Assembly (NCBI RefSeq): GCF_023055435.1
Contig: NW_025963779.1
Location: forward strand, 48,794,001-48,858,000
Origin: Haliotis rufescens
Lineage: Eukaryota
Direction: 5' to 3'
DNA length: 64,000 nt
Under the pieces are notes generated by a model. The model made no database searches, was not told where the DNA came from, and saw only the letters and a list, made by a program, of their open reading frames with translations. The position numbers and the translations under genes were made by a program. Position 1 is the stretch's first letter; every line of letters starts with the position of its first letter. This document shows positions 3,191 to 26,993 of the stretch, piece by piece.

Positions 3191-4282
3191 TTACATAATG
3201 TTAGTGTACTGGTTTCCCGAGGGTTGCATGGACTTAGTAGCACTGGGGAGTGACTGATGTACACTAGGGTACAAATAGTCATAGGGATTTCTAGACCTGT
3301 CAAAGCTGGAAGATGAACATTGAGGCATGTAGGTTCCAGCCAGGGACGAGCTTCCCGGGGGAGAGCTGGAGAGAGGGGAGCCGGTCAGGGAGCTGTTCAT
3401 GCTGCTGGCGTTGTAGTAGCCAGTTGTAGGAGAGTAGCCTGTAGGAGATCCCATGGTCCAGATACAGGGGTCAGGCTTGCCTGTTGTGCTGTATGGGTGT
3501 GTCTGGGTTAGTCCCGGGGGTAAGGAGCCGAGACTCAGGGGGTTGAAGCTTGTGTAAGGAGATGGACCTCCATACAACCCCAATAACTGTCCGTAGGGAC
3601 TGGCAGGATGGAATGAAGGATCTTCTCGACGTTGCTTTTGTGCCGACTTGAAACGTTTAGAACGACGGAGGAAACTGCCGTTGCCGAACATGTCCCCACA
3701 AGATGGATGCAGAGCCCACAGGTTACCCTTGCCTGGTTTCCCTGGGGGTCGGGGCACCTTGACGAAACAGTCATTGAGGGAGAGGTTGTGTCTGATGGAG
3801 TTTTGCCATCTCCGTTGGTTGTCTTCGTAGTATGGGAATCTCTTGACGATGTAGTTGTAGATGTCGTTGAGAGTCATCATGCCTGTTGTGGAACTCTCGA
3901 CGGCCATGGTGATGAGAGCCACATAGGAATAGGGAGGCTTCTTGTTGGAAAACTGCCTGCTTTGTTGGGAGAGAGTTGACGTTCCTGGGACAGTGTCTAG
4001 ACTTGGGTCCTCTTCCTCATCGTTTTCGGAGCTCAGTGAGGAAGATGGTGAAGGCAAGGTGTTGTGATCGCCGCCTGGAACTCGATGCTGTTGAAGAGAC
4101 TCCCTCATGTCTCTAGGAGAGAGTTCAGGCCTGACGTCAGCTTCACGTAAAGGTACATATGACTCGACCTGGAACTTGGACGAAGGAGGAAGCTGTGTTG
4201 CATATGGAGGTGTCATCGTCATTGCCATAGCTGGGTCGGCAACGGCATTTCCATACTGAAACGTTGCTGGATTGAACAACAT
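3191..4282 (-). CDS. foxAB: Forkhead-box transcription factor, FoxAB-like, copy 1 (363 aa, intronless)
   Basis: Complete forkhead domain [14 protein letters not shown]...[20 protein letters not shown]...[29 protein letters not shown]. It mixes FoxA-like ([18 protein letters not shown]) and FoxB-like ([11 protein letters not shown]) features; [10 protein letters not shown] fits my recollection of FoxAB. ATG at 4282, TATA-like at 4359-4365, AATAAA at 2967-2972 (minus). The Fox call is certain; the subclass is inferred. Confidence 0.9.
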
Positions 4283-4358
4283 TTTGTTATCTCAGAAAAC
4301 CCAGTGTGTTATAACTGAGTAACAGTGAGACTGTATGCCTTCACATTTGTCGGCGGAG

Positions 4359-4557
4359 TATATATCCCTGTACTAATCCCCCAAGAAAACATCTTACAAT
4401 TCCAATTTGCTCCCCGAGAGAGAATCTATTGTTATATTGTAAATTGGACTGTACTACTCTCGGTGAATTACAGGAGGTGTGGCCAGTGTATAATGCGCCC
4501 GGATGCTATTGGCTACTGGTAAACATAAGTCCCGCCTACCTACTTACAGACCAATCA
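4359..4557 (-). promoter_or_regulatory. Putative promoter of Fox copy 1
   Basis: TATATA about 77 bp upstream of the ATG, TAATCC at 4374-4379, ctattggct CCAAT box about 4506, GC box cccgcc about 4530. The CCAAT and GC-box block is shared with copy 2. Confidence 0.55.
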
Positions 4558-7500
4558 TTTGTTCCACATTGATAGGAACCTCTAGCCTGCATAATGAACA
4601 TGTATGATACTGTGAAAAATGTCTACCTACTTCTCTTCACCATAGTTAAATTAATGTTCCACAAAAAACCATAAGCCGAATAAAATATATATGGCGATGA
4701 ATGTGTTTCTACATTAGATGAATAACACAAAGGAATTTTGGCCACAAGGCAACACTTGTAATTACATAAGTACACATTTTGATAAAGGCTTTCCTACCCC
4801 TCTTTTCACTGAGGCAGCTCAACCTATATCCATAGGGTTCCAGTAGCCCTCGGGGGATCAAGTACATGTCAAGTTCTAAAGCTTAAATCAACACTGATGT
4901 CATAACCCTGTAGAACAAATTACATTTTACCAAATATATGTCTAGATGATAAAAGTAAAGGTAAAGGCCAAATGAACAAGACGTATTCTACGTATCAAAA
5001 TACGTTAAATTGTTTGTCTTGATTCACGGCAAGTATCTCGAGCTGGGTATCATAATTCCAATGTTCTTGTAAATTAGATGCTGTAAATGGATACACTACA
5101 GCCCGCTATGAGAGGAGGGATACATGCACTACATTTATGATCAAAGGATCGGCATATCTTTGTGTCGAACTATAATGAGTGATGGTGACCTGTATGTACA
5201 TTTTGAAACCAGCGACACCTGGTGACATATTTAGTGGGATAGGCTGGGCATATGTATGTGTTGTAAGTGAATGGTCCCAAGTGACATAACCACCACATGT
5301 CGGATACGTCACGGGCCATGGAGGCGGTAATCGAATCGGGGAGACGTAGGGATTCGTTAAAAGGTTGTTTCTACACTTATTGACATCACAACAATTCAGT
5401 ATCGATCATCACTGAAATAACACCCAATCTGTGTCAGCAGCTGAGTGGTATCAAGATCTTGTACAAGTACACCTCCTACATACATACCCCTTTGTCTGAA
5501 CAATGTACGAGAATGAATGATTAAAAACAAATTAACAGGCCAATATATTGATATAGTTGTTGCTCAAGTTTTCATTTGTTACAAGGTATTTTCCATTTGT
5601 TGTTGTCAGTGGAATGATGATAATAATTTAAATTATCGCAATAGAATCTATTCGTCTTCTAATATTCAAGCTATGACTTTGTATGCACGAAGGGGATATT
5701 TTAGGCTAAACATGGACATTGCAAAAATACTCAAATGCTCAGAGAATAGTGATGTGGCATGTTGGTGAAGGATGACGCAAGTAATCGTATCGGGGAGCCT
5801 TAATGACTCAGTTAATGTGTTGTCTCTACACTTACTGACGTCACAATAAACACGCAGCATCACACTTCTCGGGTTGTCAGCATCGATCATTACAGAAACA
5901 ACGCATAATCTGTGTCAGCAGTTCTCTTAATTAAATTTAGATCCCTTCATTGGACAAATGATGTTGTACAAACTGTGAAATTGTCCCTACGTTATAGTGT
6001 ATACTGTTTGTCGGAATATTTCAACTCTGTAAATAGTGAGCTAGATTAACACTTCTTTATTTAGAGGTCTATATTATTCAAAACATTTGTATGGTCATAT
6101 TAATGTTGTACACCCAGGAGGAAGGGATAGCATTACAGGTAGTAATGCAACATCATTGCAGTTTTAGTTGAACAACAGATATTTCCTCCTTATATCGATT
6201 GCTTCTATTACAGCACATGTGTGTATTATTGCACACCTGAAAGTGTTACAGAGATTGGCTTCTCGGAAAGTGGAATACCAGTTGATGAAATCATCTGGTA
6301 AAGGTGACAAACTCCATGTGATTGTCACCCAATGCTGTTCATTACATGGGGTTTAGCAATTATGTTAGAGGTGTTCGTGAACATGTTAGAAAAACACCAC
6401 ATGCTTTGATGAAGCCGCCCAGGTAACAAGATTTAAAGGAAACTGGATTAAGATTCGAAGGCCCAGCCACATGTAGAAAATCTATTGTTTTATCAAATAC
6501 CGATTATGACTGTTGTTCATAGCAAGTACAATATTGATGCAGTTATTGTTTTCTTACGCTTCCTAATTCACCGTCAGTAGCACGGCCGCCCTTTATCAAC
6601 TGGCTATTGACTACCGTATTTCCAAAATGGATTACTGTAAAACTGCATTTCTCCCTTTCTATCGCCCCGATACTGAAATCAGAGTAAGTACGGTGGCGAC
6701 AGCGGCAGGGGACAATGCAGACGCCAGACGCCAGAATCCAATATCACAGAAGACCGAAATATAAATCTTGTTTTTTTTCTTATGTGTGACATCAACATTA
6801 TTTACGGCCTCTTTAAGGATGTTGAAAAAAGTGTACAAGCTTTAACAATATTAAACCACATTTTAATAATGATCACTCCCAGAATAGAATCCGACAACGG
6901 AAAAGTCCATTTTACGAACAGGTGGATTAAGTTTGTTTTTTCCCGAATATTCTCACAATCCTCACGTCGATTGTCTACACCTTTTCTCCTCATACCAATT
7001 GTCATATCTCTCCCGCTTTAGTATGCGATCGTCCGGCCACTGCGTTTGTCTCGCAGCCCAGCTACATCTATGGGGAACAACTTACTAGACATTTCCCTCT
7101 AAAAAATAACGTCGTCCAATATATGACGTCATCAAATTGCGAGCACATATTCAAATCTCCAGAAATGGAATAATGATCGAACAATGTTTTATCGTGAAAA
7201 ATACCACTCTTCGTTCTTCATTGCCCTTTGCAATTAATCGCGTAGCTATCACATTTATCCAAGGAAAATGTTTCTTGAAGTTAAATATACCATGATTGGA
7301 AATGTTTGATTTATGTTACACTAATCACTGCAGAACAGTGTACGTCGTTTGTTGGTGAGGGGGAAGGATCTGGTATATTTCGTGAAGCAGAAACAAACCA
7401 GAAGTACCCTTTAGTACAGCAGGATTAATGATAAAGCAGGCGTCACCCCAACACAGCATTGAGCGTTATCATATTCCATACACTGAACAACACACTCACA

Positions 7501-8605
7501 CTGAAGTATCATAGTGTTGCATGGTCAAAGAACACTACAATGACATCTACTCAACACAAGCCGGGCAAACAAACTACATCACAGAGTGTTTGTAAGACAC
7601 TGAAGAAACTTCATTTAGGTAGATACACATCTCACCTTCCATGATTTCACAGACGCTACACTATTGCTGGGAAATCCCAGATAGTAATGCCTTACAGACG
7701 GCAGTTTCCAGATTGTGAATCTCATTGTGCTTGACGTGCTGTCAAGCTGTAAATATCCATGTCATGTTCTTGAAATTGGTAGAATTAAGACAATATGCCG
7801 CTACAGCCATTTTCCAATTTGAAATCTATCAAAATTGACTGAAGTCCTTTTCCTGTTAGAATTTCTTTTTTTAAATATTGAAAATTCTATTTTAAATGTC
7901 TGTATATATCTGTAGACAACTTACATGTGATTTTATGTGAATGCATTATGTAATTGTTACTGTTATTGAATTTGCACTTGATAACATTGAACACAAAGTA
8001 CTGACACAAGCAGATGAATGGCCGGTCACATTTTTTGGACGAAACATTTGAAGAATTGCAAGACGAATGTTACACAGTTTCGCCGGAGCTAGAATCATGT
8101 AAGCCGGTCAAGCACAAGTAATAGTCTGTGACCAGTCACTGTAAGCCCATTGTCGTGGGCTAAAGTCTAGTATAAATATTGAATCAGCGAGCGGTATTCA
8201 CGTAACAATCGCCAGGTGTCGCTTCTGCAGATTGTTTCCTTGATGCCAGATCATGATGTAGGTTCGTCGAGTTACTACACAGCTGTAGGAATCTGTGTAT
8301 CTCGTAGATGTAGCTACTACCAATACCAATAATGACGAATACGTTTCATTGACAGACGGGCATGTCTAACCAACCTACCCGACAAGACCTTACTTAACAG
8401 GGATTAAAAACGATTGAGTGATCGCACAGTAAAACGAACACTGGAATTCACATATGAAAAAAAAGAGAAATGTTAAAAAGATTTTTATTAATACATATAT
8501 ATATATATATTCATATGTAAATAGAAAAAAGTACATTTTATTTAACAGTGGAATTTCTGTTCATAAACGGGATAAACATTCAATGACACTAGGTGTGTAT
8601 ATGTG

Positions 8606-8776
8606 AGTGAGTGAGTGAGTGAGTTTGATTTTACGCCGCTTTTAGCAATATTCCAGCAATATCACGGCGGGGGACACCAGAAATGGGCTTCACACATTGT
8701 ACCCATGTCGGGAATCGAACCCGGGTCTTCGGCGTGACGAGCGAACGCTTTAACCACTAGGCTACCCGACCGCCCC
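8606..8776 (-). mobile_element. SINE family A, full length with TSD
   Basis: Near-identical to 461-628; 13-bp TSD gtgtgtatatgtg at 8593-8605 and 8777-8789. Confidence 0.9.
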
Positions 8777-8994
8777 GTGTGTATATGTGGTTGTATACAG
8801 TGTCTCAATTCACTTGTCACAATAGTCAATACGCGTAGGTTCAATATCAACTGATAGTTAACTCTAAAAATAAAAACAATATTTCCCTATGCTGTGGAAT
8901 AGAGCTAGCTAGAGCTGCCTAGACTTGCTTTTGTATGCGTTTCTAGATTTATTTATTTTTCATAGAATAAATATATTCCACGGTCATGGTGCAG

Positions 8995-9712
8995 GACTAG
9001 AGGAGATTGGACTGTAGGAGATCCCAAAGTCCAGATACTGGGCTCAGGTTTACATGTTGTACTTTAGGGGTGTGTCTGGGTCAGTCCCTGGGGTAGGGAG
9101 CTGTGCTGTAGGGGTGTGTCTGGGTCAGTCCCTGGGGTAAGGAGCTGTGCTGTAGGGGTGTGTCTGGGTCAGTCCCTGGGGTAAGGAGCTGTGTTGTAGG
9201 GGTGCGTCTGGGTCAGTCCCTGGGGTAAGGAGCTGTGCTGTAGGGGTGTGTCTGGGTCAGTCCCTGGGGTGAGGAGCTGTGCTGTAGGGGTGTGATTGGG
9301 TCAGTCCCTGGGGTAAGGAGTTGTGCTGTAGGGATGTGTCTGGGTCAGTCCCTGGGGTAAGGAGCTGTTCTGTAGGGGGGGGGGGGGGGGGGGTCTGGGT
9401 CAGTCCCTGGGGTGAGGAGCTGTGCTGTAGGGGTGTGTCTTGGTCAGTCCTTGGGGTAAGGAGCTGTGCAGTAGGGGTGTGTCTGGGTCAGTCCCTGGGG
9501 TAAGGAGCTGTGCTGTAGGGGTGTGTCTGGGTCAGTCCCTGGGGTAAGGAGCTGAGACTCAGGGGGTTGAAACTTGTGTAAGGAGATGGACCACTATACA
9601 ACCCGCATAACTGTCCGTAGGGACTGGCAGGATGGAATGAAGGATCTTCTCGACGTTGTTTTTGTGCCGACGGAGGAAACTGCCGTTACCGAACAATTCC
9701 CCGCAAGATGGA
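8995..9712 (-). pseudogene. Truncated FoxAB-like pseudogene (end of forkhead domain plus C-terminal region), closest to copy 1
   Basis: 9553-9712 aligns to copy 1 about 3530-3710 and shares the copy-1-specific ggactggcaggatggaatgaaggatcttctcgacg. It has a 19-bp deletion between cgac microhomologies, lacks most of the forkhead domain, and is interrupted by a 44-bp tandem array. Confidence 0.9.
9065..9552. repeat. 44-bp minisatellite, about 11 copies, derived from Fox coding sequence
   Basis: Unit gctgtgctgtaggggtgtgtctgggtcagtccctggggtaagga is the reverse complement of the [13 protein letters not shown]-coding segment. One unit carries a poly-G run. Confidence 0.95.
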
Positions 9713-10770
9713 CTTGTTCAATTACTAACACTCTAGTAATACAGTGTGCGATTTATTTATGACATTAATAAATAAAGAATTTAATTCTGAATAAATTGTG
9801 CTGTAAACATACATTCCTGATTTGTGAAAAAAACATATAAATATAAATCGGTTGCGTATAAAAATTCTCAATTCCGAAAACACTATAAAATCGTTTGATA
9901 TTTTCTGGAGCAATGTATTTTCTGTAAGGTGAAAATGTTCTACAAATTCACGTGACTAAGTCATATATGTAAGACAAACTGTACTTATGACCATACGGCC
10001 TGAAATACTGAATATCATAATTGTGTCTAATACATATTTATACCCACATGAAGTTTACTATCGTATGTCATCTAATTAAACATGATCGGCGATCGAATGG
10101 TTAATGTCACTGGCCACCGTCTTCATACGCATTTGTACATACAGGACACCATCTTGCTGTATCAAAGAGTTGAAATCTTAACGTCAGTTTGTTTCGTTTA
10201 ATATTTACACATCAAATTGAGAAGACTTGTTTCCACTTGATTACCTTCCCGAAATGAACAAAGTCACCACGTGATGATCCATATCAGACACAGCACGTTA
10301 GAGTCTATTATTTATCTATTGCCAAGTCCTTGTTTCTTGTCGGCTCAAGCATCAAAGTGAAGGTGTCTTGTTCCTCAGCATATACAGACACCCTCCCGTG
10401 ATACTCCGGTAAAGCAACAAGCAGCTTAGTGTAATCCGACCACACTACATGAAAACCAAAACCAAAATAGTGATAATCTGTTGTTTACTTTAAGTGACGA
10501 GGATCTTAAGTCACCTTTGGTGTAGGACCAACTCAATAGTTTATATGTCTTTAAATAATATACATTTTCGAAATAGTTTAAGTTCAATACTTTTTAAGAT
10601 GTTTAAAAGACGGCAAACAATGTCACAACATATTTGTTGTTATAAGTTACTACATGTGTGTTAATGCGTTCTATATGACTTGTGTATATACGTCAATTAT
10701 TGACTGGATTCACTGTGCGTCATATGTATAATCTACGTATAATGTACATGTAATGTACAAGTGCATGTGA

Positions 10771-10772
<2 letters not shown>

Positions 10773-10821
<49 letters not shown>

Positions 10822-10938
10822 ATAGGATCTGTGCACACAGGAGCGTATACCTGATCTTTGTAAAATGACAACATTGAGGGATCTGTGCACACAGGAGCGT
10901 ATACCTGATCTTTGTAAAATGACAACATTGAGGGATCT
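10773..10938. repeat. (TAC)n microsatellite followed by a 54-bp perfect tandem duplication
   Basis: (act/tac)n at 10773-10821; ggatctgtgcacacaggagcgtatacctgatctttgtaaaatgacaacattgag occurs twice. Confidence 0.9.
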
Positions 10939-11471
10939 TTGCACGCGACCAAGTATTCTAATACTATTTCAAAGTAAATCTAGATTAAAATTACACCTTA
11001 ACTGGAAAATAGCAACTTTGTTGAAATTTCTTCCATGACTAAATCAACTAAGTGTGAAGTATATCAGTTTCTGTGGCTGTGTTCTGATCGTTTGGTTCTG
11101 GCTTGATGCAGCGTCTAATGTCAATGTGCATGGTACATGGCCTGTGTGTGAAACGGACATAGCCATAAAACAGACATGGTTTCAGTGAAGGTGTCAGGAG
11201 GTAGCCACGAGAATGTAGTGTTGAGAGCTTGGGTTTACATGCGTTTACATACACGCTGGATGTTTATAGCCAAACACCATCGCTGATTCCATACCCTCGC
11301 AATTACATTCAACGCGTGAAAAGAAACTTCATTTGCTGCAATCTAGGTTATGACGTCGCTCGATGGAGATCAACTTATTATTGGGTACACTGACCAGCAC
11401 GTCAGAGAAAAAAGACATCTTCCATGACATGTTAAAGATATGGCAAAATAAACTCCAATGCCTTGTGGATA

Positions 11472-12920
11472 TATACTGAACCAAATTAAACACTTCACAA
11501 TCCTAAAATTTTAACAATTTGACCAGTCATGGCCACGTATTGTCTTCAGATAACACCCGTTTTTGTGCAGGTGAATCGATCAAAATCATGTGCACAGCAC
11601 TATAGTGGCAAAAGTGTTTTTTCACGTGCAACTGGTCACGTGGCCATAATACCGCACGTGTTTTCAGCCATACTTGTTAGCAGTCATTAACAAGAAAAGA
11701 AAAACACAAGAAAACAAAAGTCTTTACGGCCATTTGTCATGCCACGCCTTTCAAATGTGCAACGTGAACGTGCCATCGGCATGTTGCAGACGGGAACGTC
11801 CGTAGCTGAAGTCGCAAGGACGATGGGTTGTAGTCGACGGACTGTTTATGATTTACAGACGCCTCTACAGCAAACGGGTACCACCGCTGATCGCCCTCAG
11901 CCAGGTCGACCACGTGTGACATCACATGCAGAGGATCGTCAGATTGTCTTACGTCACCTCCGTAACCGATTCTTGACGGCTACATCAACCAGAAATGAAC
12001 TGTTTAGGGGTAGACTTTGTGCGCAAACTGTTCGAAACCGTCTGAGAACGGCTCACCTTCAAGCACGATGGCCATACTGCGGGCCGATTCTGACTCAATT
12101 ACACAGACGTCAACGTCAATTGTGGGCACAGCGACACTTACGATGAACTCAGAGGAATTGGAATCAAGTCGTCTTCAGTGATGAATCCCGATTTAATCTT
12201 CGATTTGCGGATGGTAGGGCGAGGGTGTGGAGGCGCCGTCATGAACGTTACGCCCAGTGTTGTGTACAGGAAGTTGACAGATTTCGAGGCGGAAGTGTCA
12301 TGGTGTGGGGTGCTTTCTGTGGCAATGCACGTTCCAGGCTTCTTGTCATCCGTGGCAACCTCAACGCTGCTGCTTACCGCGACCAGTTACTGGCACCAAA
12401 ACTTCTGCCTTTTATGGCAGCACATGGACCCGGTTTGATCTTCCAACACGACAATGCCAGACCCCACACAGCAATTTTGACAAGGAATTTCCTTCAGAAT
12501 GAGTCAACGTCATGGACTGGCCGTCAAGGTCTCCCGACCTCAATCCCATCGAACACGTCTGGGATGCCCTTGGCAGAAGTCTGCGCACTCTCCAGAACCA
12601 ACCATTTTGCAGCAACAATGGCGTCGTCTTCCCAATCATGTGTTCACAAGCATCACAAGGTCCATGCGGAGGCGTTGTGTGGCAGTTGTCAACGCACATG
12701 GTGGCCATACATGCTACTGAACTTGTGTGCCATCAGATTCTCGTGTTTGGGACTTATGGTTTAAACTGTTGATGTTATTACCGAATACCGTAGGTGCTTG
12801 GAACAAATTATGGTTACCACCGTTAATTAAAATCCTTCTTTGGACATTAATGATTAAAAATTACCTTCTCTGATACATGTGTCCGTTGTATATAATATAT
12901 GGGATTACTTTTAAAAATGT
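11472..12920 (+). mobile_element. Tc1/mariner DNA transposon with disrupted DDE transposase (11739 to about 12720)
   Basis: MPRLS..RERAIGML, DRPQPGRPRVT, VVFSDESRF, FQHDNARPH, WPSRSPDLNPIEH. Premature TGA at 12144-12146 and a frameshift near 12500. The left end tatactgaac is shared with the 40096 element; no right TIR was found. Confidence 0.9.
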
Positions 12921-12923
12921 AAT

Positions 12924-13875
12924 GAGGAGGGAATATTGAAGCTATTATAACATGATGTTTCAGCACTACCGAGGAGGGAATATTGAAGATATCATAACAT
13001 GATGTTTGAGCCATACCGAGGAGGGAATATTGACGCTATTATAACATGATGTTTGAGCCATATCGAGGAGGGAATATTGCAGGTATGATAACATGATGTT
13101 TGAGCCATACCGAGGAGGGAATATTGACGCTATTACAACATGATGTTTGAGCCATACCGAGGAGGGAATATTGCAGGTATGATAACATGATGTTTGAGCA
13201 CTACTGAGGAGGGAATATTGAAGGTATGATAACATGATGTTTGAGCCATACCGAGGAGGGAATATTGAAGCTTGATAACATGATGTTTGAGCCATACCGA
13301 GGAGGCAATATTGAAGATATGATAACATGATGTTTCAGCACTACCGAGGAGGGAATATTAAAGCTATGATAACATGATGTTTCAGCCATACCCAGTGGGG
13401 AATATTGAAGCAATTATATCATGAATTGTTAGCCATACCGAGGAGGGAATATTGAAGCTATTTTAACATGATGTTGAGCCATACCGAGGAGGCAATATTG
13501 AAGCTATCATCACATGATGTTGAGCCATACCGAGGAGGGAATATTGAAGCTATCATCACATGATGTTGAGCCATACCGAGGAGGGAATATTGAAGCTATC
13601 ATCACATGATGTTGAGCCATACCGAGGAGGGAATATTGAAGCTATCATCACATGATGTTGAGCCATACCGAGGAGAGAATATTGAAGCTATCATCACATG
13701 ATGTTGAGCCATACCGAGGAGGGAATATTGAAGCTATCATCACATGATGTTGAGCCATACCGAGGAGGGAATATTGAAGCTATCATAACTTGATGTTTGA
13801 GCCATACCGAGGAGGCAATTTTGAAGCTATCATAACTTGATGTTTGAGCCATATCGAGGAGGCAATATTGAAGCT
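12924..13875. repeat. 46-47-bp minisatellite, about 20 copies
   Basis: Unit ccataccgaggagggaatattgaagctatcatcacatgatgttgag with variants. Confidence 0.95.
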
Positions 13876-14279
13876 TCAGCGCATGGAGAACACACACACG
13901 TACAACATCCAGCAGTGGGAGATAACACGCTGAACAAATTGAGATGCCATGATGATGTACAAAAAAGACATCGAGATAAAGAACACCACTACACAAGAAT
14001 AGACAATTTTGTGATAAAGCATATTTATTTTTGAATGTATATTATACATATATATCAATAATTATATAACTTATATCAAAGCATGAAAGAGTACATTTAC
14101 AATTCAAGTCACTTGTGATATATGCATAGACATCAGTCGTTGCTGTGTCAACCAAGTTTATGTATAATATAATTATATAGTGGCGTACCTGTACGCCTTT
14201 TACATCAATGACAAGCAATTTGATAGCACTATTATCGATGCTTTTGATCCTGAGATGATATGATTGTCAGCCAAGGCCT

Positions 14280-15386
14280 TCATTTGGACATACCATATGA
14301 ATACATAGGCTGTGAAGCTCCTGTGAATGACTGACACAACTGAGGATAGGAATAATTATATAAATTTTGGATAGCACTCGAGCTCGGTGATGACACTTGT
14401 GGCATATATGTCCCAGCTAGAGGCGAGCTTCCCGACTGGGCAGACAGCATATGTGGCATGTAAGGTCCTGGTGGAGAGCTGGAGAGAGGGGAGCCGGTCA
14501 GAGAGCTGTTGATGCTACTGGCGTTGTAGTAGCCGGCTGTAGGAGAGTAGACGCTAGGAGATCCCAAAGTCCAGGTACTGGGGTCAGACGTGCCTGCTGT
14601 GTTGGGTGTGTGTGTCTGGGTCAGTCTCTGGGGTAAGGGGGTAAGATTCAGGTTGAAACCTTGGTAGGGGGATGGGCCCCCGTAAAGACCAAACTGTCCG
14701 TATGATGTGAACCGTTGAATCAGTGCGTCGTCTTGTCGCTGTTTGTGTCCTGACTTGAAACGTTTAGAACGACGGAGGAAACTGCCGTTACCGAACATGT
14801 CCCCACAAGAAGGATGCAGAGCCCACAGGTTACCCTTGCCTGGTTTCCCCGGGGGTCGGGGCACCTTGACGAAACAGTCATTGAGGGAGAGGTTGTGTCT
14901 GATGGAGTTTTGCCATCTTCGTTGGTTGTCTTGGTAGTAAGGGAATCTCTTGACGATGTAGTTGTAGATGTCGTTGAGAGTCATCATGCCTGTTGTGGAA
15001 CTCTCGACGGCCATGGTGATGAGAGCCACATAGGAATAGGGAGGCTTCTTGTTGGAAAACTGCCTGCTTTGTTTTGAGAGAGTTGATCTTCCTGAGACAG
15101 TGTCAATGAGTAGTTCGTTATTGCTGTCCTTATCTGTACACGGTGACGATGATGGTGAAGGCAGAGGGTCGTTATCGAGCAATTCTGCCTGTTGTCGCTC
15201 TGTTTCTCCGAGGAACATGTCATCTATTCTGTTCGGCGTTCCTGGGGGCGCAGTTGTCTCCCTTGTGAGTGCCACTCTTGTAAATGTTTGAGGCAACATG
15301 TACGACGGCAACACTGGTGTCTCACCCTGCATCACAGCATCCCCAGCCACGTTGCCATACGGAGATACACTAGTATGATTCAACAT
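14280..15386 (-). CDS. foxAB: FoxAB-like copy 2 (368 aa from first ATG)
   Basis: Same forkhead domain. The ORF-track start at 15476 is a TTG upstream of the TATA box. ATG 15386 gives [19 protein letters not shown], homologous to copy 1 [25 protein letters not shown] at 14024-14029 (minus). Confidence 0.9.
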
Positions 15387-15461: not shown

Positions 15462-15624
15462 TTTATATCGCCGCAAAGATTATCCCCTCAATACAGATAG
15501 CTTTGTCTTTTGATTAGTCAGCCATTGTTGGGTAATTTGGAATGGGTAACGTTCACAAGAAGGCGTGATATCTTTAATTGGCCGTTCATTCCTATTGGCT
15601 ACCAGATCTGAAGCTCCGCCCACC
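15462..15624 (-). promoter_or_regulatory. Putative promoter of Fox copy 2
   Basis: ATATAAA (minus) about 77 bp upstream of ATG 15386. CCAAT boxes at about 15577 and 15594 (ctattggctac) are followed by GC box ccgccc, the same arrangement as copy 1. Confidence 0.55.
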
Positions 15625-16898
15625 ATTGTTCATACCATTAAACCACTCCTGCTTGGGAAGCGCTTTTAAATAGATCGTTTAATCCAATTTGATTTCCAAA
15701 TTTTTTTATGCATATCAAAGTCGATTTTTGTCTGTAAAATTATTGTAAAATAAAAAAAATACGATCAGGAACGCGGGTAATTACATGCACACTTAAAGAC
15801 ATAGTATATTTAAATCGTGGAACAAGAGCAGTTCTACTGATGTTAGTGATGTAATAAGTTACTACATGTATGGTCAGTGTAATGTACATATGAAGCATGT
15901 GCTATATAAAGACAGCGTACTCCCAGGCTATCACATCAGGGTATCAAATCAAGTCGTACATAAAAACGACAAAACCCTTTTCATTTTCGCAATATATCTC
16001 TGGTAAAAACAGAGAAGCTTGTACGGTTCCGACTATATCATGAGCATATGTTTGGGAAACTCCATCACCATAAAACGTTTTGAAAGCTTTACTGATACCT
16101 TAAACGTTGTAACTTTGATCAAACAACTTTTGAGTCGTAAGACGCTCTTTGAAATCTTCATACAAAGATCATGTTCGATTGTACCTAAGTGTTGTGTATT
16201 GTAGAGACCAAAGGCTGGAGCTGCCGGAATATTACTCGAACAGAAAGGAAAGGTTGACTTTTGGAACGTTGAAGTCATTCATCTTGTCACTCTGACACAT
16301 ACAAAAACATACTTTTGTCAGTAGGAATTGTACACGATTCTTCTTGTGAAAACTATGAAAAACGTGTAGAAAATACCAACGGTTACATATGTTAGTAGGG
16401 GTATGTGTGGACTTTACGAGCAAAATAGAACAAAGAATTTACAAAGCATATTTGACTGGAAATAACATATTACAAAAGAATGGATCAAACGGGGACATTT
16501 AGTGAATTTAGTGCCAACTGACTGCTGGTAAATTCCCCTCCACAAACAAGTAGCTGCTGATAACTGTGGTTCACTGACAACGAATTGCCATTATTATGCA
16601 AAAATAAAATGCTTCGGTAAATATTCCAAGCACGTTAAAGCCATTTCCACCACATTTCAATCCAAGTTCTACCCTACGTGTATAAGCATAAGAATCGTCC
16701 AAAGATAAGATTTTAATTTCAAGATATTGTTGAACCTATTGTTCATTTCAGTGTACATTACATACGTTAAATTCGGAAATTGTTTATAATATTAGATCTT
16801 TCATAGATGCATGCAATTCTACAAAATACAGTTACTGATTAGCTGAAGGTGTATCTATCAGTTCCAGTTAAATTGTTCTGACTATCATGCACAAATAG

Positions 16899-17284
16899 GT
16901 GAGGTGCGATGAAATTGNNNNNNNNNNNNNNNNNNNNNNNNNNNNNNNNNNNNNNNNNNNNNNNNNNNNNNNNNNNNNNNNNNNNNNNNNNNNNNNNNNN
17001 NNNNNNNNNNNNNNNNNNNNNNNNNNNNNNNNNNNNNNNNNNNNNNNNNNNNNNNNNNNNNNNNNNNNNNNNNNATGCCGATTTATAGTGCTAGCTCACT
17101 GAGATACCATGCCGCAGTTTAACATGAAAACACCACTCTGACAGTATACTGACTCTGAGCCGACCAGTCCTTGTTTTAGCCCCTTAATGCCGAGCCTCTG
17201 GCAGGGTAACAACGAGTACCATCTTTTAACGTCTTTCCGTATGACGCGGCCGAACGCTCTACCACAAGACCACGGAGGCGGTCC
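16899..17284 (-). mobile_element. SINE family B spanning an assembly gap
   Basis: Tail start (gtgaggtg) lies before the gap and body/head after it; TSD tgcacaaatag at 16888-16898 and 17285-17295. Confidence 0.85.
16918..17074. other. Assembly gap (N)
   Basis: Run of N. Confidence 1.
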
Positions 17285-18471
17285 TGCACAAATAGAGACG
17301 AGTCACTCTTAAAAGGCGTACTTGATATTAAGATCACAATAACACATGAATGACATCAGGTTTGGTGTACAGCAGATATGACGTGCGGCCAGAACTGTGA
17401 TATACCATGTGCTATATGTTATTACCCGTTCATGACACAGCGTACATCCGGGTAACTACATGGCCATGACTGTGGGTGTCATTGAAGGAACCATTGGAAC
17501 AATGCATGTAACACTTTCGTAATGAGATCCCTGCTCCTCCACTGATTGTGATCTGACTGGAAGATGTACATCACACCCTAATCAAAACCCTTACCCACTG
17601 GCTACGGCGTACCCCCAGGACCCTCAACCCCCTGGGGATGATTGACCAATATGTCACTCACGGATCAGCTTTGTTAAACATGTCAGTTTTAACTACTAGA
17701 ATCAATATTAACTATCCCACACTGACTACTGAAAGGTGCACAATAAAGTCGAAAATTGGTGTTCGATATTTGCTAGCAATTCAAAAGGATGGCAATACTA
17801 ACAGGAACTATACCTAAAAAAACACAGACTGGAGTATACCACCATTCACGGTAAGACAAGAGCAATCAATTAAGTCATTATCCTTATATATTTGCATGGA
17901 AAGTATATGCACGTGACCGACTATGAAATTGAAATTGGATGTACTCTTAACACGTATACTTTTATTTCACTTCAAAAATGTGCGAATGTGGGTATATATG
18001 ACACGAGCAATTGTTACTGGTTTACCTTTTTGGCTTGATAAACGAGCTATTGGTATCACAACAAATCAGCACCCAACTGTTGTTGGTATCGATGATCATA
18101 GAAGCAACATTCAATCTGTGTCAGTTAAGCTGAAGATTGTTCCTGTTGTGATCTTTAGAGATGGCGTGTTCTACACTAACAAATCAAAATAGATAGTATG
18201 CAAGCGAATTTCAGTCCGATTCCAAACAGCGAAATACAATTTAACAAGACCGGAATGATTGTTGCTCAGGCTGTTACCAAAGTTTACCGGTGGTATTTGA
18301 CAACATGGCAAACACGCGTGATCCAGCATGCCGTGCCACCACCTTGTGAATGTGGTTCTCCGTAACCATTGGGCTTTTCTCAATACATACTATTTCTCAG
18401 AGCATCATGGAGTTATAAACTTAAACGACTTTAAAATGGGTACATTATTGTGTAGTATCATTGTGAATAAA

Positions 18472-18630
18472 TGAGTGGGTGAGTAAGCATGCGTTTACGC
18501 CGCTTTTGAGCAATTCTCCTGCAATATGACAGCGGTGGACACCCGAAATGGGATTTCACATTGTACCCATGTCGGGAATCGAACCTGGGCCTTTGGGGTG
18601 ACGAGCGAACTCTTTAACCACTAGGCTACA
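18472..18630 (-). mobile_element. SINE family A, diverged
   Basis: Aligns to 8606-8776 with multiple substitutions. Confidence 0.85.
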
Positions 18631-19940
18631 TGTGCATATGTGCTTCCGTTAACTAGTTTCTAGACTGCATCATCGTTGTGGATGTCTCCCCCTACTCTTC
18701 ATCTTCCACAATACCAGGCAGTCTTTCAGACTATTTGACAATACCAATACCGTTTCCAAAGTTTTACACAGGTAACGAGATTCGATCACCTAAACTAGAT
18801 CTATCCGGACCACAATGCAAGTGTAGCTGTCTTCAGACAGCGATTAGTAGTTGGATTTGTGGATAAAGATAATGTTCGTAAGTCTCTCCTCATTTAATTC
18901 ACCATTTGTTCCTGGCCCGCGCTTCGTTGTGGCCCTTTGATGTCTGCCGACACGGGCCGGCGACTTACCAGTTACAACCCGCTCACGTCTTAGGTTACTG
19001 GGTTACGGTTATTATGGTGACAGTGGTCCACTCGCCTTCAAACATAGTATATTATATCCAATTTGCAAATAAATAGAATTAAATTTCGCAAAGCATTGTC
19101 CTAATGCCATCCTATTCTGTAACCCATGGGCCAGAAACAACAGATCAACTTGAAGGATATTTCCCAGTATATTCTGCCTAAAGAGAGTTGTAAAGAAGGA
19201 ATGATAATAGTAGTCCTTATTCAAATTAATTCTTTTATCACGTTAATCGTGTTTTCTTCTTCTGGCGAGTGTTGAGCAGCGTTGTAGTGCGTTATTGGTG
19301 TTTGAAAGTTCTTTCCGTGCGCATGGACCTGCCAAGTCATGAAATTGACATTTTCATGATGACTATTTAATCCTTTCATGATACCTCTAAATATGAAAAA
19401 TATAGTTGAAATTAGTGAAAAGTTCACAAGGTTTTAATGATGATGCGTTGGCGCTTTATATTTACCAGAAACGTTCACACCTGACTTTGATGTCAGTGGA
19501 CGGAGAACAAACATGAAGCCGTCTCCCGAGGACTGCACCTGTGATATGTCGCTGATTTAAAGTGCGTCGTTAACTGTCTTAGTGGATACTTGATTCTGTA
19601 CCAACTAGCTATCCGATAACAGCATTAATTTCTTTTTTTAGGTAACCCCCTCAACATTCATGTTATACAATACAGTGTCATCAAACATATATAATATAAA
19701 AACACCCTCATGACTTCTGAGAGACCTTTGTCCTCTCCGACAGGCATAATTGAATAGCATCCTTTATTTGAAAAATACTGTTTCTCGTGTTTCCTTTGGC
19801 ACAGTTTACTGCGACTGCGTATCTTACAGAAACACAAACGCAGCATGGACTCGTTATGTCAGTTGTTGGAACACAGCATACCTTTTCGAGAGTATCCACC
19901 ACCACAGAATCATTTTTCACTCTCAGTTGTACTTCAGTTA

Positions 19941-20036
19941 CTGTTTGTTTGTTTGTCGCCTTTTACGACAAGCATAGTGGCCTTTTACGGCAAGGGTGGG
20001 TTGCTGAAGACCTATTCTAAAACGGACCTTCACGGG
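19941..20036 (-). mobile_element. Family C, internally deleted copy
   Basis: gtcgccttttacgacaagcatag...gggttgctgaagacctattcta...cttcacggg joined directly to (gttt)n. Confidence 0.7.
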
Positions 20037-21026
20037 ATAGTTACTTTATAATCTAATAGTGTTTGCCAAAATATGTAGACCGTTTAAGGTTAATAAAGTT
20101 GTCAGTAGTGAATATCATTTATGATCATTAAACTAAAGTATTTGTTCATGACATAAGCCTAGGACATAAAAACATGTATGTCATACCCCAGTGACGTAAG
20201 TATGCAAATTAGATAACGGGAAACAGCACTTTTTCACTGGTGTGCGTGATCTGGTTATTCAGGGAACAACACGGATTCCTTTGGTCACGTCGATGTTGGA
20301 AACAGCCTTTGATAGATGACAGGGGGTGACACTGTTGTCTGCTCTTGAAGGTTACCGGGTGGTTACAGACTGATGGTCACAGATACAGACTGTAAATAAC
20401 ATCCCCATGACCATTTTCTTGGCGAATGATGAAGAGCTGTTTATACCGTCACACACTCTACATACCAATGCTTTATCGGAAGTCGTACTGAGAAAGTCAA
20501 ACCATCCACCAAAATGTGTAAAAATGTGTAAAGCAGGCAGGGTCCAGACGTCAGATGGACTGACAAATCACTTTGCCGCGTACACACCTTGTCCAAAGGT
20601 TGAATGACAAAAATGTTCCACCCAATCAAAACTCTCAGGTAACTGATTACAAGAACAACCATTCTGTGAATCATAACTCTCACATAAATCCTGATAACTA
20701 CCATCAATTTTCCAAAATAATTTCAGGAAGCATTCCATCAAACACACTGAGCACAGAAACATCCCAGCTTGATTTGTTCCTGGAACCCCCCTGTCGCATA
20801 ACAGCGTCCCGTGCATACGTCATGTTCAAATCGCCAGGAGACAACAATCAGCAATCTCAAATCATCTAGTTTTCTTTGTCTCGTCATGAGATGTTTGCTG
20901 GTTTTGTAACTTTCTGAAACTAAACCATTAATCATGTTATACCTCCAAGTCCAGTGCCAGTCAAACGGCGCCTACTTTTCGTTGAAAGCGACATGACATC
21001 GACTAAAATGTATTGTTGTCAGCTAT

Positions 21027-21058
<32 letters not shown>

Positions 21059-21740
21059 ACAAGTTAGAGCGTGGTTAGAATGACTAAAGTTGTGGAATTA
21101 CACCGCAGATATGATGAAATACAACAAAGTGCATCGTTATTGTTGTAATATATAAAGTTGCAAATATGCTGTAACATATCGTTCAATCAGGTTGGGGGTC
21201 CAGGAATACCAGAGAAGGTATATGGATATTAAGTTTGTTTCACGTTCCCAATAAATAAATATATCTGGATGCATAACATACCACAATTTCGAAATGAAAA
21301 TGATAAATAGAATTCACCATGAGTGGTTTTTAATATGGGAGAGGTACATGATGTCAATATAGGTTTCGCTCTTATGTCAAGCTGTGGTTTTCTGATCTCA
21401 CTGTAAGACTGTTCAAAACCCACTGACTCACTCACTGTGCAACTCTTTAAAATACATTATGTAAACGTAATGCAGCAATACATCAATATGCCATGATAAG
21501 AATGTGTCGTGTAGATTTGTTCCTGTCAAATGATTTTGCAATGCCAAATGCCCATGAACAAACCAGCAACTTTTAAAATTCTGGAAATAAATAGTTTATT
21601 CATAAATAAATGCTGTATGTGCCATTCAATATTACAAAGGCGTCATACGGAGAAGCATATAAATAGTCAATGTATAACAGTGAGATACATGTACAATGGT
21701 TATTGTTCAGAGCACTACTGAGCCCACTTCCAGTCTTTCG

Positions 21741-22868
21741 TCACTGATCATTTGCTAATGCTGTGCTGAGGCTTGGGTAAAGATGTCCTGTGTGCTGTCT
21801 GGGTGCGAAGTGCTGTTGTAGAGCCAGGTAAGTTGTGTGGGTGTGGTCCGACTGGGCACATGGCATCTGTGGTATGTAGACCACTTGGGGTCCTGATGGA
21901 GAGCTGGAGAGAGGGGAGCCGGTCAGAGAGCTGTTGACGCTGCTGGCGTTGTAGTAGCCAGCTGTTGGAGAGTAGACTGTTGGAGATCCCATTGTCCAGA
22001 TACTGGGGTCAGGCCTGTTTGCTGTGCTGTAGGGAAGTGTCTGGGTCAGTCCCTGGGGTAAGGGGCCAAGGTTTAGGGGGTTGAAACCTGGGTAGGGGGG
22101 CGGAACCCCGTAAAGACCAAACTGTCCGTTCGGACTGACCTGATAGAGAGTGGTGTCATCCTGGCGTTGTTTTTTAGCAGACTTGAAACGGTTAGAACGA
22201 CGGAGGAAACTGCCGTTACCGAACATGTCCCCACAAGATGGATGCAGAGCCCACAGGTTACCCTTGCCTGGTGTCCCCGGGGGTCGGGGCACCTTGACGA
22301 AACAGTCATTGAGGGAGAGGTTGTGTCTGATGGAGTTTTGCCATCTCCGTTGGTTGTCTTGGTAGTAAGGAAATCTCTTGACGATGTAGTTGTAGATGTC
22401 GTTGAGAGTCATCATGCCTGTTGTGGAACTCTCGACGGCCATGGTGATGAGGGCCACATAGGAATAGGGAGGCTTCTTGTTGGAAAACTGCCTGTTTTGT
22501 TGTGAGAGGGTCGACGTTCCTGACACACTGTCAAAGCTGAGATTGATATCATCGTCGTTGTCGGAGGATACTGAAGATGATGGTGATGGCAGGATGCTGT
22601 TGTCCTCGTGTACTGACAGGTTATATTGGTCACTGGGCAAAGTCTCCGTGTGTGTAGTATTCCATCCACTTTCTGTCACAGACGTATGCTGAGGCCTGTG
22701 TTTAACGTCCACGTCCCTTTGTACAGGTAGAGAATGTAAGGACGGGTGAGATACCGGCGTGAAGAGGGATGTCGAAGACGGCCACTGCTGCGTCAGACAG
22801 CGGGTGCTCTCGTCTCCATCACGGCACACCTGGAAGGGGTTTACACAAGGCATAACTGAACTCGTCAT
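21741..22868 (-). CDS. foxAB: FoxAB-like copy 3 (375 aa)
   Basis: Same forkhead domain with two private substitutions ([15 protein letters not shown]). ATG 22868, TATAAA at 22933-22938, AATAAA at 21595-21600 (minus). Confidence 0.9.
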
Positions 22869-24235
22869 ATTTACCCAAGGGAAGAACAGGATGCTTTAGT
22901 GTTATATGTCGATACTTTCCACATCCTGGGCATTTATACCAGAACAGATTCAGGTGTCTTTGGCGAACAAACTGGATAACAATACAAGTTACACATAGAA
23001 GAAGAAAAAGAGATTTGCGTTAATTAAATGTGTGCTGTCATTGGCCGATCATGCTATGCTGATCTGTCTGGTGTTGTTGTAGGTGTGGGGGCTGTTCAGC
23101 TGCACAGATCACCCGAGGACGTGCAATTGTACAATGTAAACACAGATTATCTGTGTTGACTTAAACATCTCATGCTCGTTAACATCTACTTATGTATGTA
23201 GGTTTAAACGATTGGCACAAAGAAAGCTAGAACCTCAGAAGTACTTTGCATGTCTTTACTACCTGATACTCAACATTCATATTACTAAACAGCAAAGAGT
23301 TTTAATATCAAAGTTATATTTCATTTTTAAAAATTCGACCCCACTGAGATTCACGACTAATAAGTTTTTTTTAACCAAGGCAGTTACTATACGGCGACAT
23401 AACAACAGTGTGTCTAAACAACATGGTGACTTAACAACGAGGTGAGAGGACATGAATGAAGCTTGCTGTCTCCCACTTGTAGGCATTAACATGGGCTTGG
23501 CGGCTTCTTTGATGTCGTCAAACGACTAACGAGATCAAATCAGCGCTGGATTAGGATTAACGGAATCCGTGACTTGATAGCCTAATTGTAATTTAATTAG
23601 AACGAGATTATCACTTTAATTCATGAAAGAGAAAATATTGATCCATATTCTGTTTGCTTACGCGTTCTAATGCACCATTGTCGGAACGTTTGTACCAGTG
23701 ACCTCGTCCCAGAAAACCTCCACAAGCCTCCAACCCCGGTCCCCGCCGGATCAACGTAGGCGGGGTAGCAACTGTCTTACTGCACGAGGTGGCGACAGTA
23801 GCGGACTGACTGCACGCGTCAAGCGTTATAATCCTATTTTGCAGGGAGCCAAAAGTATTTTATTTACCGATTAAACATTTTGAATATTGACAGGAAGCTA
23901 AATTCATTTTAATGGAAATTTCACAAAGCAGATCGTTATGGAAAGTGAATGCAGGTGTCTGTCACATTAGACAAAGACAAATATAAAGAACTGACTTTTA
24001 AACTTGTCATAATGTCTAAACCAACAAAAACCAACGATTTCGTCATGTACCGGTACTAAAGGCTTATTCTAAAACGTTTGTTAATATCAAACAACGTTCA
24101 TGGTCAATATTAACCTGATATATTGCCCTGCATTAACGTTGGGGTTTTAGTTGAATATATTGGAATATTAAGGCTTTTAACCACCTTAAAAAAATATTTA
24201 ATTGTTGGTATGCGGCAGTGGTGATATTCCTTGTA

Positions 24236-24730
24236 GGTGTTGACTTGGCATATACTAAGTTGAAACTGTCACGTACACACACCGTTACTTCCCTAGATTT
24301 GTTGGCCTGGTATATACCAAGTTGAAACTGTCACGTACACACACCGCTACATCCCTGGATATGTTGACCTGGCACATACTAAGTTGAAACTGTCACATAC
24401 ACACACCGCTACTTCCCTGGATATGTTGACCTGGCACATACTAAGTTGAAACTGTCACATACACACACCGCTACTTCCCTGGATATGTTGACCTGGCATA
24501 TACTAAGTTGAAACTGTCACGTACACACACCGCTACATCCCTGGATATGTTGACCTGGCACATACTAAGTTGAAACTGTCACATACACACACCGCTACTT
24601 CCCTGGATATGTTGACCTGGCACATACTAAGTTGAAACTGTCACATACACACACCGCTACTTCCCTGGATATGTTGACCTGGCATATACTAAGTTGAAAC
24701 TGTCCAGATTTTAAGTTGAAGCTGTCACAT
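24236..24730. repeat. 62-bp minisatellite, about 7.5 copies
   Basis: Unit atgttgacctggcacatactaagttgaaactgtcacatacacacaccgctacttccctggat. Confidence 0.95.
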
Positions 24731-25877
24731 ATCTTGAACATTTCAAAACCGTTATCATGGGCCAACAGCGGTCAAGACAATTATGATGATGAGTTAAATT
24801 TATCATAATATATGTCATATTTCATAATATATTTAGAAATTATATACGACCCAGGTTTTCAAGTAAAGTTGCTGTAATGTATACCGTTATATATTGTGTT
24901 TGTTCGTGTACCGGTACTATAGTTGATACATGCGATGTTGGTTTGGCACTGGTCACATTACCGATCTGATGGACATGTGGTGTTTCACATGGGAGTCGAG
25001 TGTGGAGTGTTTCCCTTTCATTTGATGTCACGGAGGAAAAATACATTATACGAATATAAACGAAATATAAACAGTTTAGCTAGACTTAACAGACACGTAA
25101 AGATTAACCTGAATTGGAGCTTTGTCGAGGACCCTGGAAAACGAAAATGGGATAAGAAATATATAATTTTGTTCCCACGAATCATTAGCTCGTTCCATCA
25201 AATATCACGTTATAATATCATACATGTAAGTTAGTGAACCGGTTTCCAATATTTGCTATTCATTGGTCACGGATGTATTTTGAACTAAATAGTGTTAACG
25301 ACAGGGGGTAAAGATGTATTTGAAATACAGACTGTTCCACAAATAAATCACCTTGGTAAAAGATTGATGGCGATTGTCAGTTTCAAAATATGCCAGGGAA
25401 AGCGACAATGCATCTGCACAGAGGCCTGAACATATATAGCAGATTAACGCCATCACTGTACACGTGTTTACTCCATTATCAAGTGTTATAACAAAATTCT
25501 ATTATCTAAAAATATAGGCAAATCATAGACCATTAAGTTAAGTTGTCAGAAGTGATGTAGAGTTACAGGTGGCGTTCCCAATATTGAAATCATTTGGTGG
25601 GGGATTGTCATAGCACAGATGAGGCTTTACGACTTACGAAATACTGCTGTTGAAAATTGTATACAAGAAACACATACAAATCACTATAATAATTGTATTT
25701 TATTATATTAGCCATTTATAACATATGTACAGGATCACATATATTCGTTTGTGATGAAGTTGCTGAATGCCACACGGCAATTGGATCAGCGATGTTAATG
25801 GTTAATATTATAGCACTTTTTTATGCAAGTGGGGTACAAAAACGTATTCAATGTCGATGATCAAAAAGTACAGATTG

Positions 25878-26993
25878 TCAGCCACTTTCCGCTTTGGTTA
25901 CTGAATCGCTGATAACATCTGAACTGCTCTTCGAAAATGTCAAGGCTTGGTAAAGAGCTGGGTAACATGAATGTGAGAAGTCTGTGAGAGAACTAGGATA
26001 TGGCATCTGTGGCATGTAGGTCCCACCCAGGGACGAGCATCCCGGAGGAGAGCTGGAGAGAGGGGAGCCGGTCAGAGAGTTGTTGATGCTGCTGGCGTTG
26101 TAGTAGCCAGCTGTAGGAGGAGAGTAGCCTGTAGGAGATGTCATAGTCCAGGGACTGGGGTCAGGCCTATTTGCTGTGGTGTAAGGATAAGTCTGGGTCA
26201 GTCCTTGGGGTAAGGGACCGAGACTTAGGGGGTTGAAACCTGGGTAGGGGGGCGGAACCCCGTAAAGACCAAACTGTCCGTTCGGACTGACCTGATGAAG
26301 AGTGGTGTCATCCTGGCGTTGTTTTTGAGCAGACTTGAAACGTTTGGAACGACGAAGGAAACTGCCGTTACCGAACATGTCCCCACAAGAAGGATGCAGA
26401 GCCCACAGGTTACCCTTGCCTGGTTTCCCTGGGGGTCGGGGCACCTTGACGAAACAGTCATTGAGGGAGAGGTTGTGTCTGATGGAGTTTTGCCATCTCC
26501 GTTGGTTGTCTTGGTAGTAGGGAAATCTCTTGACGATGTAGTTGTAGATGTCGTTGAGAGTCATCATGCCTGTTGTGGAACTCTCGACGGCCATGGTGAT
26601 GAGAGCAACGTAGGAATAGGGAGGCTTCTTGTTGGAAAACTGCCTGCTTTGTTGTGAGAGGGTCGACGGTATGGAAACGTCAATGCCGACGCCGTCATTA
26701 TCTGAACATGACGATGGCGATGATATGTTGCTGATGTCGTTTTCTGATGGGATAGCCAGGGGCTCTACTCCCGGGGAGACCTCCAGGGCGTTTTGTACCA
26801 TATCAAGAGGTACAGTTGTTTCCCCGGGATTTGTAAACACTATGTGCGACTCGGGACTTGAGTTTGGAGACACCAATGACAACATCTGCTGCATCGAAGA
26901 AAACGACGACATCATGTTGGATAATTTGTCAGTTTCTTCCGTGCTATAGTTAAACATATCTATACCAGGAACACTCGTGTTGGTGGCCGACAT
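25878..26993 (-). CDS. foxAB: FoxAB-like copy 4 (371 aa from first ATG)
   Basis: Same forkhead domain. The ORF-track start at 27023 is GTG; the first in-frame ATG is 26993. TATATAA at 27071-27077, AATAAA at 25699-25704 (minus). Confidence 0.9.

Follow-up and report, generated by a model that had tools for sequence, protein, structure and literature searches.

A tandem array of FoxAB-class forkhead genes in the abalone Haliotis rufescens, with near-constant DNA-binding domains and diverged protein ends

The stretch of DNA analysed here (the window) comprises 64,000 nucleotides of the red abalone, Haliotis rufescens (NCBI RefSeq assembly GCF_023055435.1, contig NW_025963779.1, positions 48,794,001 to 48,858,000), and between its positions 3191 and 26993 it carries four complete forkhead genes and the remnant of a further one. 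The window very likely contains the right-hand half of a series of tandemly arranged genes of the FoxAB class of forkhead (Fox) transcription factors, made up of old duplicates whose forkhead domains have been constrained by selection and homogenised by conversion and whose protein ends have diverged. FoxAB is a little-studied Fox class that has been lost in vertebrates and panarthropods and has been reported in one or two copies. The four complete genes, designated F1, F3, F4 and F5, are the following:

3191..4282, minus strand: F1, single open reading frame (ORF), FoxAB-derived, 363 amino acids (aa); forkhead domain at 3686-3943 (Pfam Forkhead, 1.1e-36)
14280..15386, minus strand: F3, single ORF, FoxAB-derived, 368 aa, ATG at 15386; forkhead domain at 14793-15050
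21741..22868, minus strand: F4, single ORF, FoxAB-derived, 375 aa; forkhead domain at 22221-22478
25878..26993, minus strand: F5, single ORF, FoxAB-derived, 371 aa, ATG at 26993; forkhead domain at 26373-26630

Each of these genes encodes one Pfam Forkhead domain (PF00250, E about 1e-36) and no second Pfam domain, and in each of them an in-frame stop is located 12-96 nt upstream of the ATG. RefSeq/UniRef proteins identical residue for residue to F1, F3, F4 and F5 are available, with the same start codons, so that the coding sequence of each gene is contained in one exon; the contigs of a sequencing run described below (X1) are collinear with the ends of the F4 and F5 ORFs, which fits the intronless coding sequences of clade-I Fox genes. 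In H. cracherodii, the genome of which was assembled separately, every one of the four has a distinct orthologue with an identity of at least 90%, that of F1 being a 363-aa protein within the same 90% cluster. DNA likeness among the units of the window is confined to a core of ~660-745 bp inside the ORFs (85-92% identity by blastn); the flanks of the units could not be aligned, and no promoter likeness between them was found by blastn. The first-pass annotation of this DNA, which had described four complete, co-oriented, single-exon forkhead ORFs spaced about 4-7.5 kb apart, plus one decayed unit, is confirmed at the nucleotide level: the four intact genes, all on the minus strand, match RefSeq proteins exactly, a remnant accompanies them, and the start-to-start distances are 4.1-7.5 kb. 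A TATA-like box and a polyadenylation signal had also been ascribed to every gene. An AATAAA is indeed present 141-251 nt past each of the four stops, and a TATA-like box at -70 in F4 and at -84 in F5, both elements being consensus matches that carry little weight; on the other hand, no strict TATA(A/T)A(A/T) was found within 400 nt of the ATG of F1 or F3.

A whole-genome PF00250 scan (1.33 Gb) together with a tblastn search over 244 kb around the window rendered an array of ten forkhead ORFs and two relics, which extends over ~155 kb (48.668-48.821 Mb) with all its members on the minus strand. Its left half consists of copies A (48.668 Mb), B (48.674 Mb), C (48.686 Mb), D (48.694 Mb) and E (48.700 Mb), and is followed by an ORF-poor spacer of ~90 kb, after which the right half begins with copy F at 48.790 Mb and continues with F1, F3, F4 and F5. 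One of the relics is located at 48.682 Mb, and the other, F2, lies in the window. Recent tandem duplication gave rise to C, D and E, whose units are 97-99% identical (98-99% for D versus E). No FoxAB-like copy of the array type was found elsewhere in the genome by the PF00250 scan or by tblastn. The earlier proposal of a lineage-specific FoxAB array in the window was right yet understated, the five units that it counted being the right-hand half of a ten-gene, two-relic array. Two identical forkhead ORFs of 406 aa were also seen elsewhere, one at C223 30.416 Mb (a chromosome) and one at C413 2414-2671 (a short contig), and this pair is probably an unplaced duplicate haplotig. The copy nearest to the window is:

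48790433-48791347, minus strand: copy F, 3 kb left of the window; its open frame begins just after a good splice-acceptor-like CAG

Copy F has no homology to the first ~63 codons of F1, and its RefSeq model (233 aa) begins at a methionine within helix 1 of the domain. Models of 233-246 aa that resemble it are found in three other Haliotis species. Copy F could be a truncated gene, or it could have an unannotated upstream exon.

Assignment to the FoxAB class was based on a careful maximum likelihood (ML) tree of 91 forkhead domains (113 columns, copy F being represented by its open frame). In this tree, the FoxB proteins of vertebrates (FoxB1), Saccoglossus, Owenia and Haliotis form a clade with support 99/95, and a FoxAB clade of 54 rows (99/93) includes Owenia FoxAB-1 and FoxAB-2, five ambulacrarians, molluscs and all the Haliotis array genes. 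The Haliotis array is itself supported at 99/94, and 23 derived copies are grouped at 100/98 with copy A as their sister; a quick tree agreed with the careful one. None of the protein-search matches carried the name FoxAB, and the class labels rest on two Owenia fusiformis proteins of 450 and 377 aa, taken as the published FoxAB-1 and FoxAB-2, and on a third of 295 aa, taken as FoxB, all three being identified by comparison of their lengths and first residues with the supplement of Seudre et al. 2022 (PMC9539403). Since the 113-column domain alone was not decisive in an approximately unbiased (AU) test, considered below, likeness outside the domain was examined. F5 and Owenia FoxAB-2 are 57% identical over 235 residues located on both sides of the domain, including an STLSQQ-type motif before it and about 115 residues after it, whereas F5 aligns with the FoxB of its own genome within the domain only. 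That FoxB (L018 = P0139, at C1:9.73 Mb) opens with MPRPGR directly before the domain, a layout with the domain at the N-terminus that the window genes do not have. The genome's own FoxA (L008) contains Forkhead, Forkhead_N and HNF_C, and a FoxA reading of F1, F3, F4 and F5 was rejected, as none of them has the Forkhead_N and HNF_C regions, PF00250 being their only domain; the solved structures closest to the array proteins are those of FOXA2, FOXA3 and FOXA1. The forkhead-domain phylogeny and the homology of the flanks agree, and they support the membership of the array genes in the FoxAB class, apart from FoxB and FoxA, as had been suggested from the window. The RefSeq names of these genes (B1-like, B2-like, D2-like, E3-like, lin-31-like) are artefacts of naming against vertebrates, which lack this class.

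Copy A keeps an N-terminal SSCMM motif, which was also observed in FoxAB proteins of gastropods, bivalves, a nemertean and a brachiopod, and mostly canonical domain residues. This motif and a GKGNYW-type wing strand are used here as marks of the pro-orthologue, a criterion that was drawn from the matches of this analysis and is not an established one. The nine other copies share four replacements, namely Ile to Val in helix 1, Gln to Arg before helix 3, Tyr to Leu in the first wing strand and Ala to Ser in wing 2, none of which occurs in more than one of the 31 further FoxAB proteins in the comparison; F1, F3, F4 and F5 carry these derived residues and have no SSCMM. Judged by these residues, copy A is the conservative pro-orthologue and the nine others, including the four of the window, are derived FoxAB paralogues. 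The recognition helix is unchanged in the derived copies, from which it can reasonably be inferred that their core DNA-binding specificity is unaltered. Among the 98 residues of their forkhead domains, either none or 1-2 differ, and the first 60-85 and last 45-60 residues of the proteins hardly align. Also common to the paralogues are about 45 residues before the domain and about 110 after it. The earlier idea of one binding specificity deployed with different effector regions fits these sequences, but the parts that differ are smaller than it implied, since those flanking residues are shared as well.

An orthogroup tree built from the non-domain parts of the proteins recovered cross-species orthogroups at 99-100 support. 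F1 is grouped with a protein of H. cracherodii and two of H. asinina, F3 with proteins of H. cracherodii, H. rubra and H. asinina (99/98), C/D/E with H. rubra and H. asinina, and B with H. rubra, while F4 and F5 pair each with one H. cracherodii protein. These orthogroups indicate that most of the array is older than the split of these abalone lineages and, judging from this tree, at least four paralogue lineages predate the separation of H. rufescens/cracherodii from H. rubra/asinina. The divergent N- and C-terminal ends are kept between species. Among the matches listed, FoxAB paralogues number at least four in H. cracherodii, at least four in H. rubra and at least six in H. asinina, and one or two FoxAB proteins appear for other named molluscs. 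As far as the data reach, the array is confined to one genus, the abalones.

The forkhead domains of the array are under strong purifying selection. Nonsynonymous (dN) and synonymous (dS) divergence was calculated by segment among the derived copies (Nei-Gojobori), and in the domain dS is 0.06-0.23 and dN 0-0.01, with dN/dS<0.1. In the next 110 codons after the domain, dS is 0.2-0.75 and dN reaches 0.23; in the 45 codons before it, dS goes from 0.07 to above 2 and dN from 0.02 to 0.49; and at the N- and C-terminal ends dS is saturated. The dS of the domain is 3-10 times below that of the flanks. In addition, some copies are mosaics. F1 resembles copy F as far as the domain extends and, from there on, C/D/E, which are 100 kb away (maximum chi-square 72 at the breakpoint, permutation p<=0.0005), and in copy F the runs of informative sites switch among F1-like, B-like and C-like segments. 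There are also segments after the domain that are fully identical between copies located 90 kb apart. Finally, residues 14 and 32 of the domain follow species and not orthogroup in all 23 derived copies, being Val/Val in 13 of the 13 derived copies of H. rufescens and H. cracherodii, Val/Ile in all those of H. rubra and Ile/Ile in all those of H. asinina. Given that the species are younger than the orthogroups, at least six parallel changes would be needed to explain this distribution without conversion. These three lines of evidence agree, and they indicate that domain-centred gene conversion, or unequal exchange, has repeatedly homogenised the domains of the paralogues.

Transcription was addressed by comparing a 6-kb stretch that includes F4 and F5 (21400-27399) with the reads of four sequencing runs (X1, X9, X14 and X15). 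Contigs of X1, a run from a close relative, cover 21621-22874 (F4, with its start codon) and 25862-27024 (F5), that is, the ORFs with short untranslated ends and both unique N-terminal parts, and no X1 contig was found in the 3 kb between the two genes. The parts unique to F4 and F5 have a depth of 3-6 and the core common to the paralogues (21900-22500 and 26000-26400) one of 170-317, a difference which indicates that another paralogue is far more strongly expressed than F4 and F5 in the X1 sample. The absence of intergenic cover at depths of this order, in a run of 123 million letters, makes RNA rather than genomic DNA the probable source of these reads, and it is probable that the orthologues of F4 and F5 are transcribed in that relative. 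The only joint in the X1 contigs is a non-canonical link between the F4 and F5 paralogues, most likely an assembly chimera.

Further features of the array within the window are a relic, the tandem repeat inside it and an assembly gap:

8983..9718, minus strand: F2 relic, paralogue remnant in two frames (tblastn and blastn)
9058..9554, no strand: minisatellite in F2, 44-bp unit x 11.0 copies, 88% matches (Tandem Repeats Finder)
16918..17074, no strand: assembly gap (N run), intergenic between F3 and F4

F2 matches only paralogue residues about 192-290, that is, the last ~7 forkhead codons and the region after the domain; it is frameshifted, and no forkhead domain was detected in it by tblastn or blastn. 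The fifth decayed unit is therefore real, but what remains is a fragment that does not include the forkhead domain and not a whole decayed gene. Every 44-bp unit of its minisatellite matches F1 3485-3528, so that the repeat derives from former coding sequence. Two other minisatellites are intergenic inside the array, at 12924-13875 (47 bp x 20 copies) and 24238-24704 (62 bp x 7.5 copies), which, together with that of F2, suggests that the spacers are prone to tandem expansion. Between F2 and F3, a 179-aa ORF at 12225-12764 (plus strand) shows a Tc1/mariner-like 'HDNARPH' transposase motif and no Pfam match, and is probably a transposon relic. The gap is situated 1.5 kb upstream of the ATG of F3 and 4.7 kb downstream of the stop of F4. 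No homology to the family was found near it by tblastn or blastn, and no reading frame crosses it or relies on it. On the right it is bordered by a dispersed repeat, 17075-17251 matching 56608-56786 at 92% as well as three other places. Members of this repeat (84-92% identity; 17075-17251, 56608-56786 and 55081-55249) are also found close to a second gap at 57254-57382, and the family may be what breaks the assembly at both gaps.

According to the above results, tandem duplication made the copies before the living Haliotis lineages compared here split, and purifying selection and conversion, with breakpoints in or next to the domain, have held the domain near-constant while the 60-85 N-terminal and 45-60 C-terminal residues diverged past easy alignment. 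The proteins would bind the same forkhead sites and differ in their partners or in the place or timing of their expression. By analogy with single-copy FoxAB, which acts at these stages in annelids, oysters and bryozoans, we infer that they might work in the embryo or the larva, a possibility already raised for the window. Expression of Owenia foxAB-1 coincides with the specification of the embryonic organiser and that of foxAB-2 is highest at the gastrula, and in Capitella foxAB is found in a single D-quadrant cell and later in the foregut and oral ectoderm (PMC9539403). In the oyster, FoxAB is a larval gene that is turned off at metamorphosis, and Bugula FoxAB is restricted to larval tissue (bioRxiv 10.1101/2020.03.25.004614). 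It can also be the case, and this we regard as speculative and rather unlikely, that the derived array provides abalone-specific zygotic regulators of the cleavage-to-gastrula period, whose near-identical domains would be used in different blastomeres or time windows by means of divergent promoters and protein ends. An early-regulator array of this kind would multiply the single D-quadrant or organiser-stage function of FoxAB in annelids, and would be comparable to the spiralian SPILE or the mammalian Obox/Dux arrays.

Some observations weigh against the interpretation as a constrained and converted FoxAB array, and they are considered here with the explanations that they could favour. An expansion of FoxB (or of FoxD or FoxE) would be in line with the automatic names 'forkhead box protein B1-like', 'B2-like', 'D2-like', 'E3-like' and 'lin-31-like' and with the resemblance of the wing-2 region (HPSCGDMF...GSFLRR) to that of FoxB; moreover, joining the array to FoxB made the likelihood worse (lnL by 25.6) with p 0.098 in the AU test, and is not formally rejected at 0.05. 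This explanation is nonetheless very improbable, because the own FoxB of the genome is grouped with vertebrate FoxB1 and the array with published FoxAB at the supports given above, homology outside the domain is found with FoxAB only, and inconsistent automatic names are what is expected for a class with no vertebrate member. With respect to conversion, its cross-species evidence consists of proteins only, and the dS of the domain, low yet nonzero, could be due to selection on synonymous sites or to a mutational cold spot in very old duplicates, especially in view of the very strong constraint on the domain at the protein level. We find this improbable: neither process would account for the two domain positions at which every paralogue of a species has the residue of that species in spite of the greater age of the paralogue lineages, for the clear mosaic breakpoints between paralogues, or for the identical post-domain segments in copies 90 kb apart.

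It could also be argued that only copy A is functional and that most of the other copies are redundant and decaying, with no joint role of the array. The two relics, the 5' truncation of copy F, whose RefSeq model starts inside the domain, and the several short orthologue models in other species (233-246 aa) would be explained in this way. Regarding expression, X1 was labelled 'RNA?' by guess and derives from a relative (contigs 1-3% different) and not from this species, and the three runs with an H. rufescens label (X9, X14 and X15) gave no contigs on 21400-27399, a result that is no evidence of silence as their sample types are undefined. Decay of most copies is however difficult to reconcile with nine intact ORFs, with a dN/dS<0.1 in the domain, with orthogroups kept between deeply split Haliotis species and with probable-RNA contigs over the unique parts of F4 and F5 that become far deeper over the shared core, and its probability appears to be low, about the same as that of a synonymous-site effect. 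Lastly, the copies might be an assembly artefact, with haplotypes or collapsed repeats placed in tandem, as the N gap inside the array and the 98-99% identity of the D and E units could suggest. This is hardly credible, since the two ends and the surrounding DNA of the four window genes are wholly different, the separate assembly of H. cracherodii contains an individual orthologue for each of them, and multi-copy sets are present in H. rubra and H. asinina. The number of units is nevertheless not exact, because the gap between F3 and F4, of undefined length, might hide an extra one, and the copy numbers in other molluscs are lower bounds.

As a FoxAB array of converted domains and diverged ends, the abalone cluster can be compared with several known systems. 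With FoxAB genes of other animals (Owenia foxAB-1 and foxAB-2, Capitella teleta foxAB, Crassostrea gigas FoxAB and Bugula FoxAB) it shares the same well-supported clade, the STLSQQ-type motif that precedes the domain and ~115 collinear residues that follow it, and with Owenia foxAB-1 an uninterrupted coding sequence. It differs from them in having ten ORFs, the species so far described having one or two copies, and in its nine derived copies, from which SSCMM has been lost and in which residues have been replaced, for instance Tyr by Leu in the first wing strand. The foxQ2 expansions of annelids and molluscs, in which many of the copies are expressed early in the embryo (Seudre et al. 2022, PMC9539403), are likewise lineage-specific multiplications of a mostly intronless clade-I Fox class; foxQ2 is however a different class, and the abalone array is found in a single genus within the present data. 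FoxB, represented by the own FoxB of the genome and by vertebrate FOXB1, has a similar wing-2 sequence and has lent its name to these genes in automatic annotation, but it forms a separate clade (99/95), has nothing in common with the array outside the domain and opens with MPRPGR. For foxQ2, we know of no report of domain-centred concerted evolution. The tandem arrays of spiralian TALE homeobox (SPILE) genes cited in PMC12550047, which encode fast-evolving embryonic transcription factors, may be analogous, being lineage-restricted with conserved binding domains and divergent remainders. Cleavage-stage expression of SPILE arrays is documented, whereas the abalone array is known from its genes and from one probable RNA run with no stage assigned, so that the comparison serves as a lead only.

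No paper describing a FoxAB expansion or the Fox repertoire of abalones was found in a search that included few subscription journals. The gene models are already public, and other tandem arrays of transcription factors that evolve in concert are known; the array itself appears to be undescribed. With ten genes, it would be the largest FoxAB family known to us. It offers a clean natural case of a binding domain that selection and conversion together keep constant, while the regulatory DNA and the remaining protein sequence can diverge freely. Since abalones are raised in aquaculture and will spawn under laboratory conditions, the purpose of extra copies of one specificity can be tested directly in embryos of a spiralian. 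In four abalone annotations, automatic names that are misleading (FoxB/D/E-like, lin-31-like) are corrected by this result.

Two further observations concern the DNA of the window to the right of the array. A reverse-transcriptase fragment (RVT_1, E 4e-10) at 29627-30073 on the minus strand is a retroelement remnant located just beside it, and at 49570-52005, also on the minus strand, there is an uninterrupted ORF of 811 aa in a locally GC-richer region, with a weak Pfam match to Polysacc_deac_1 (E 1.2e-5).

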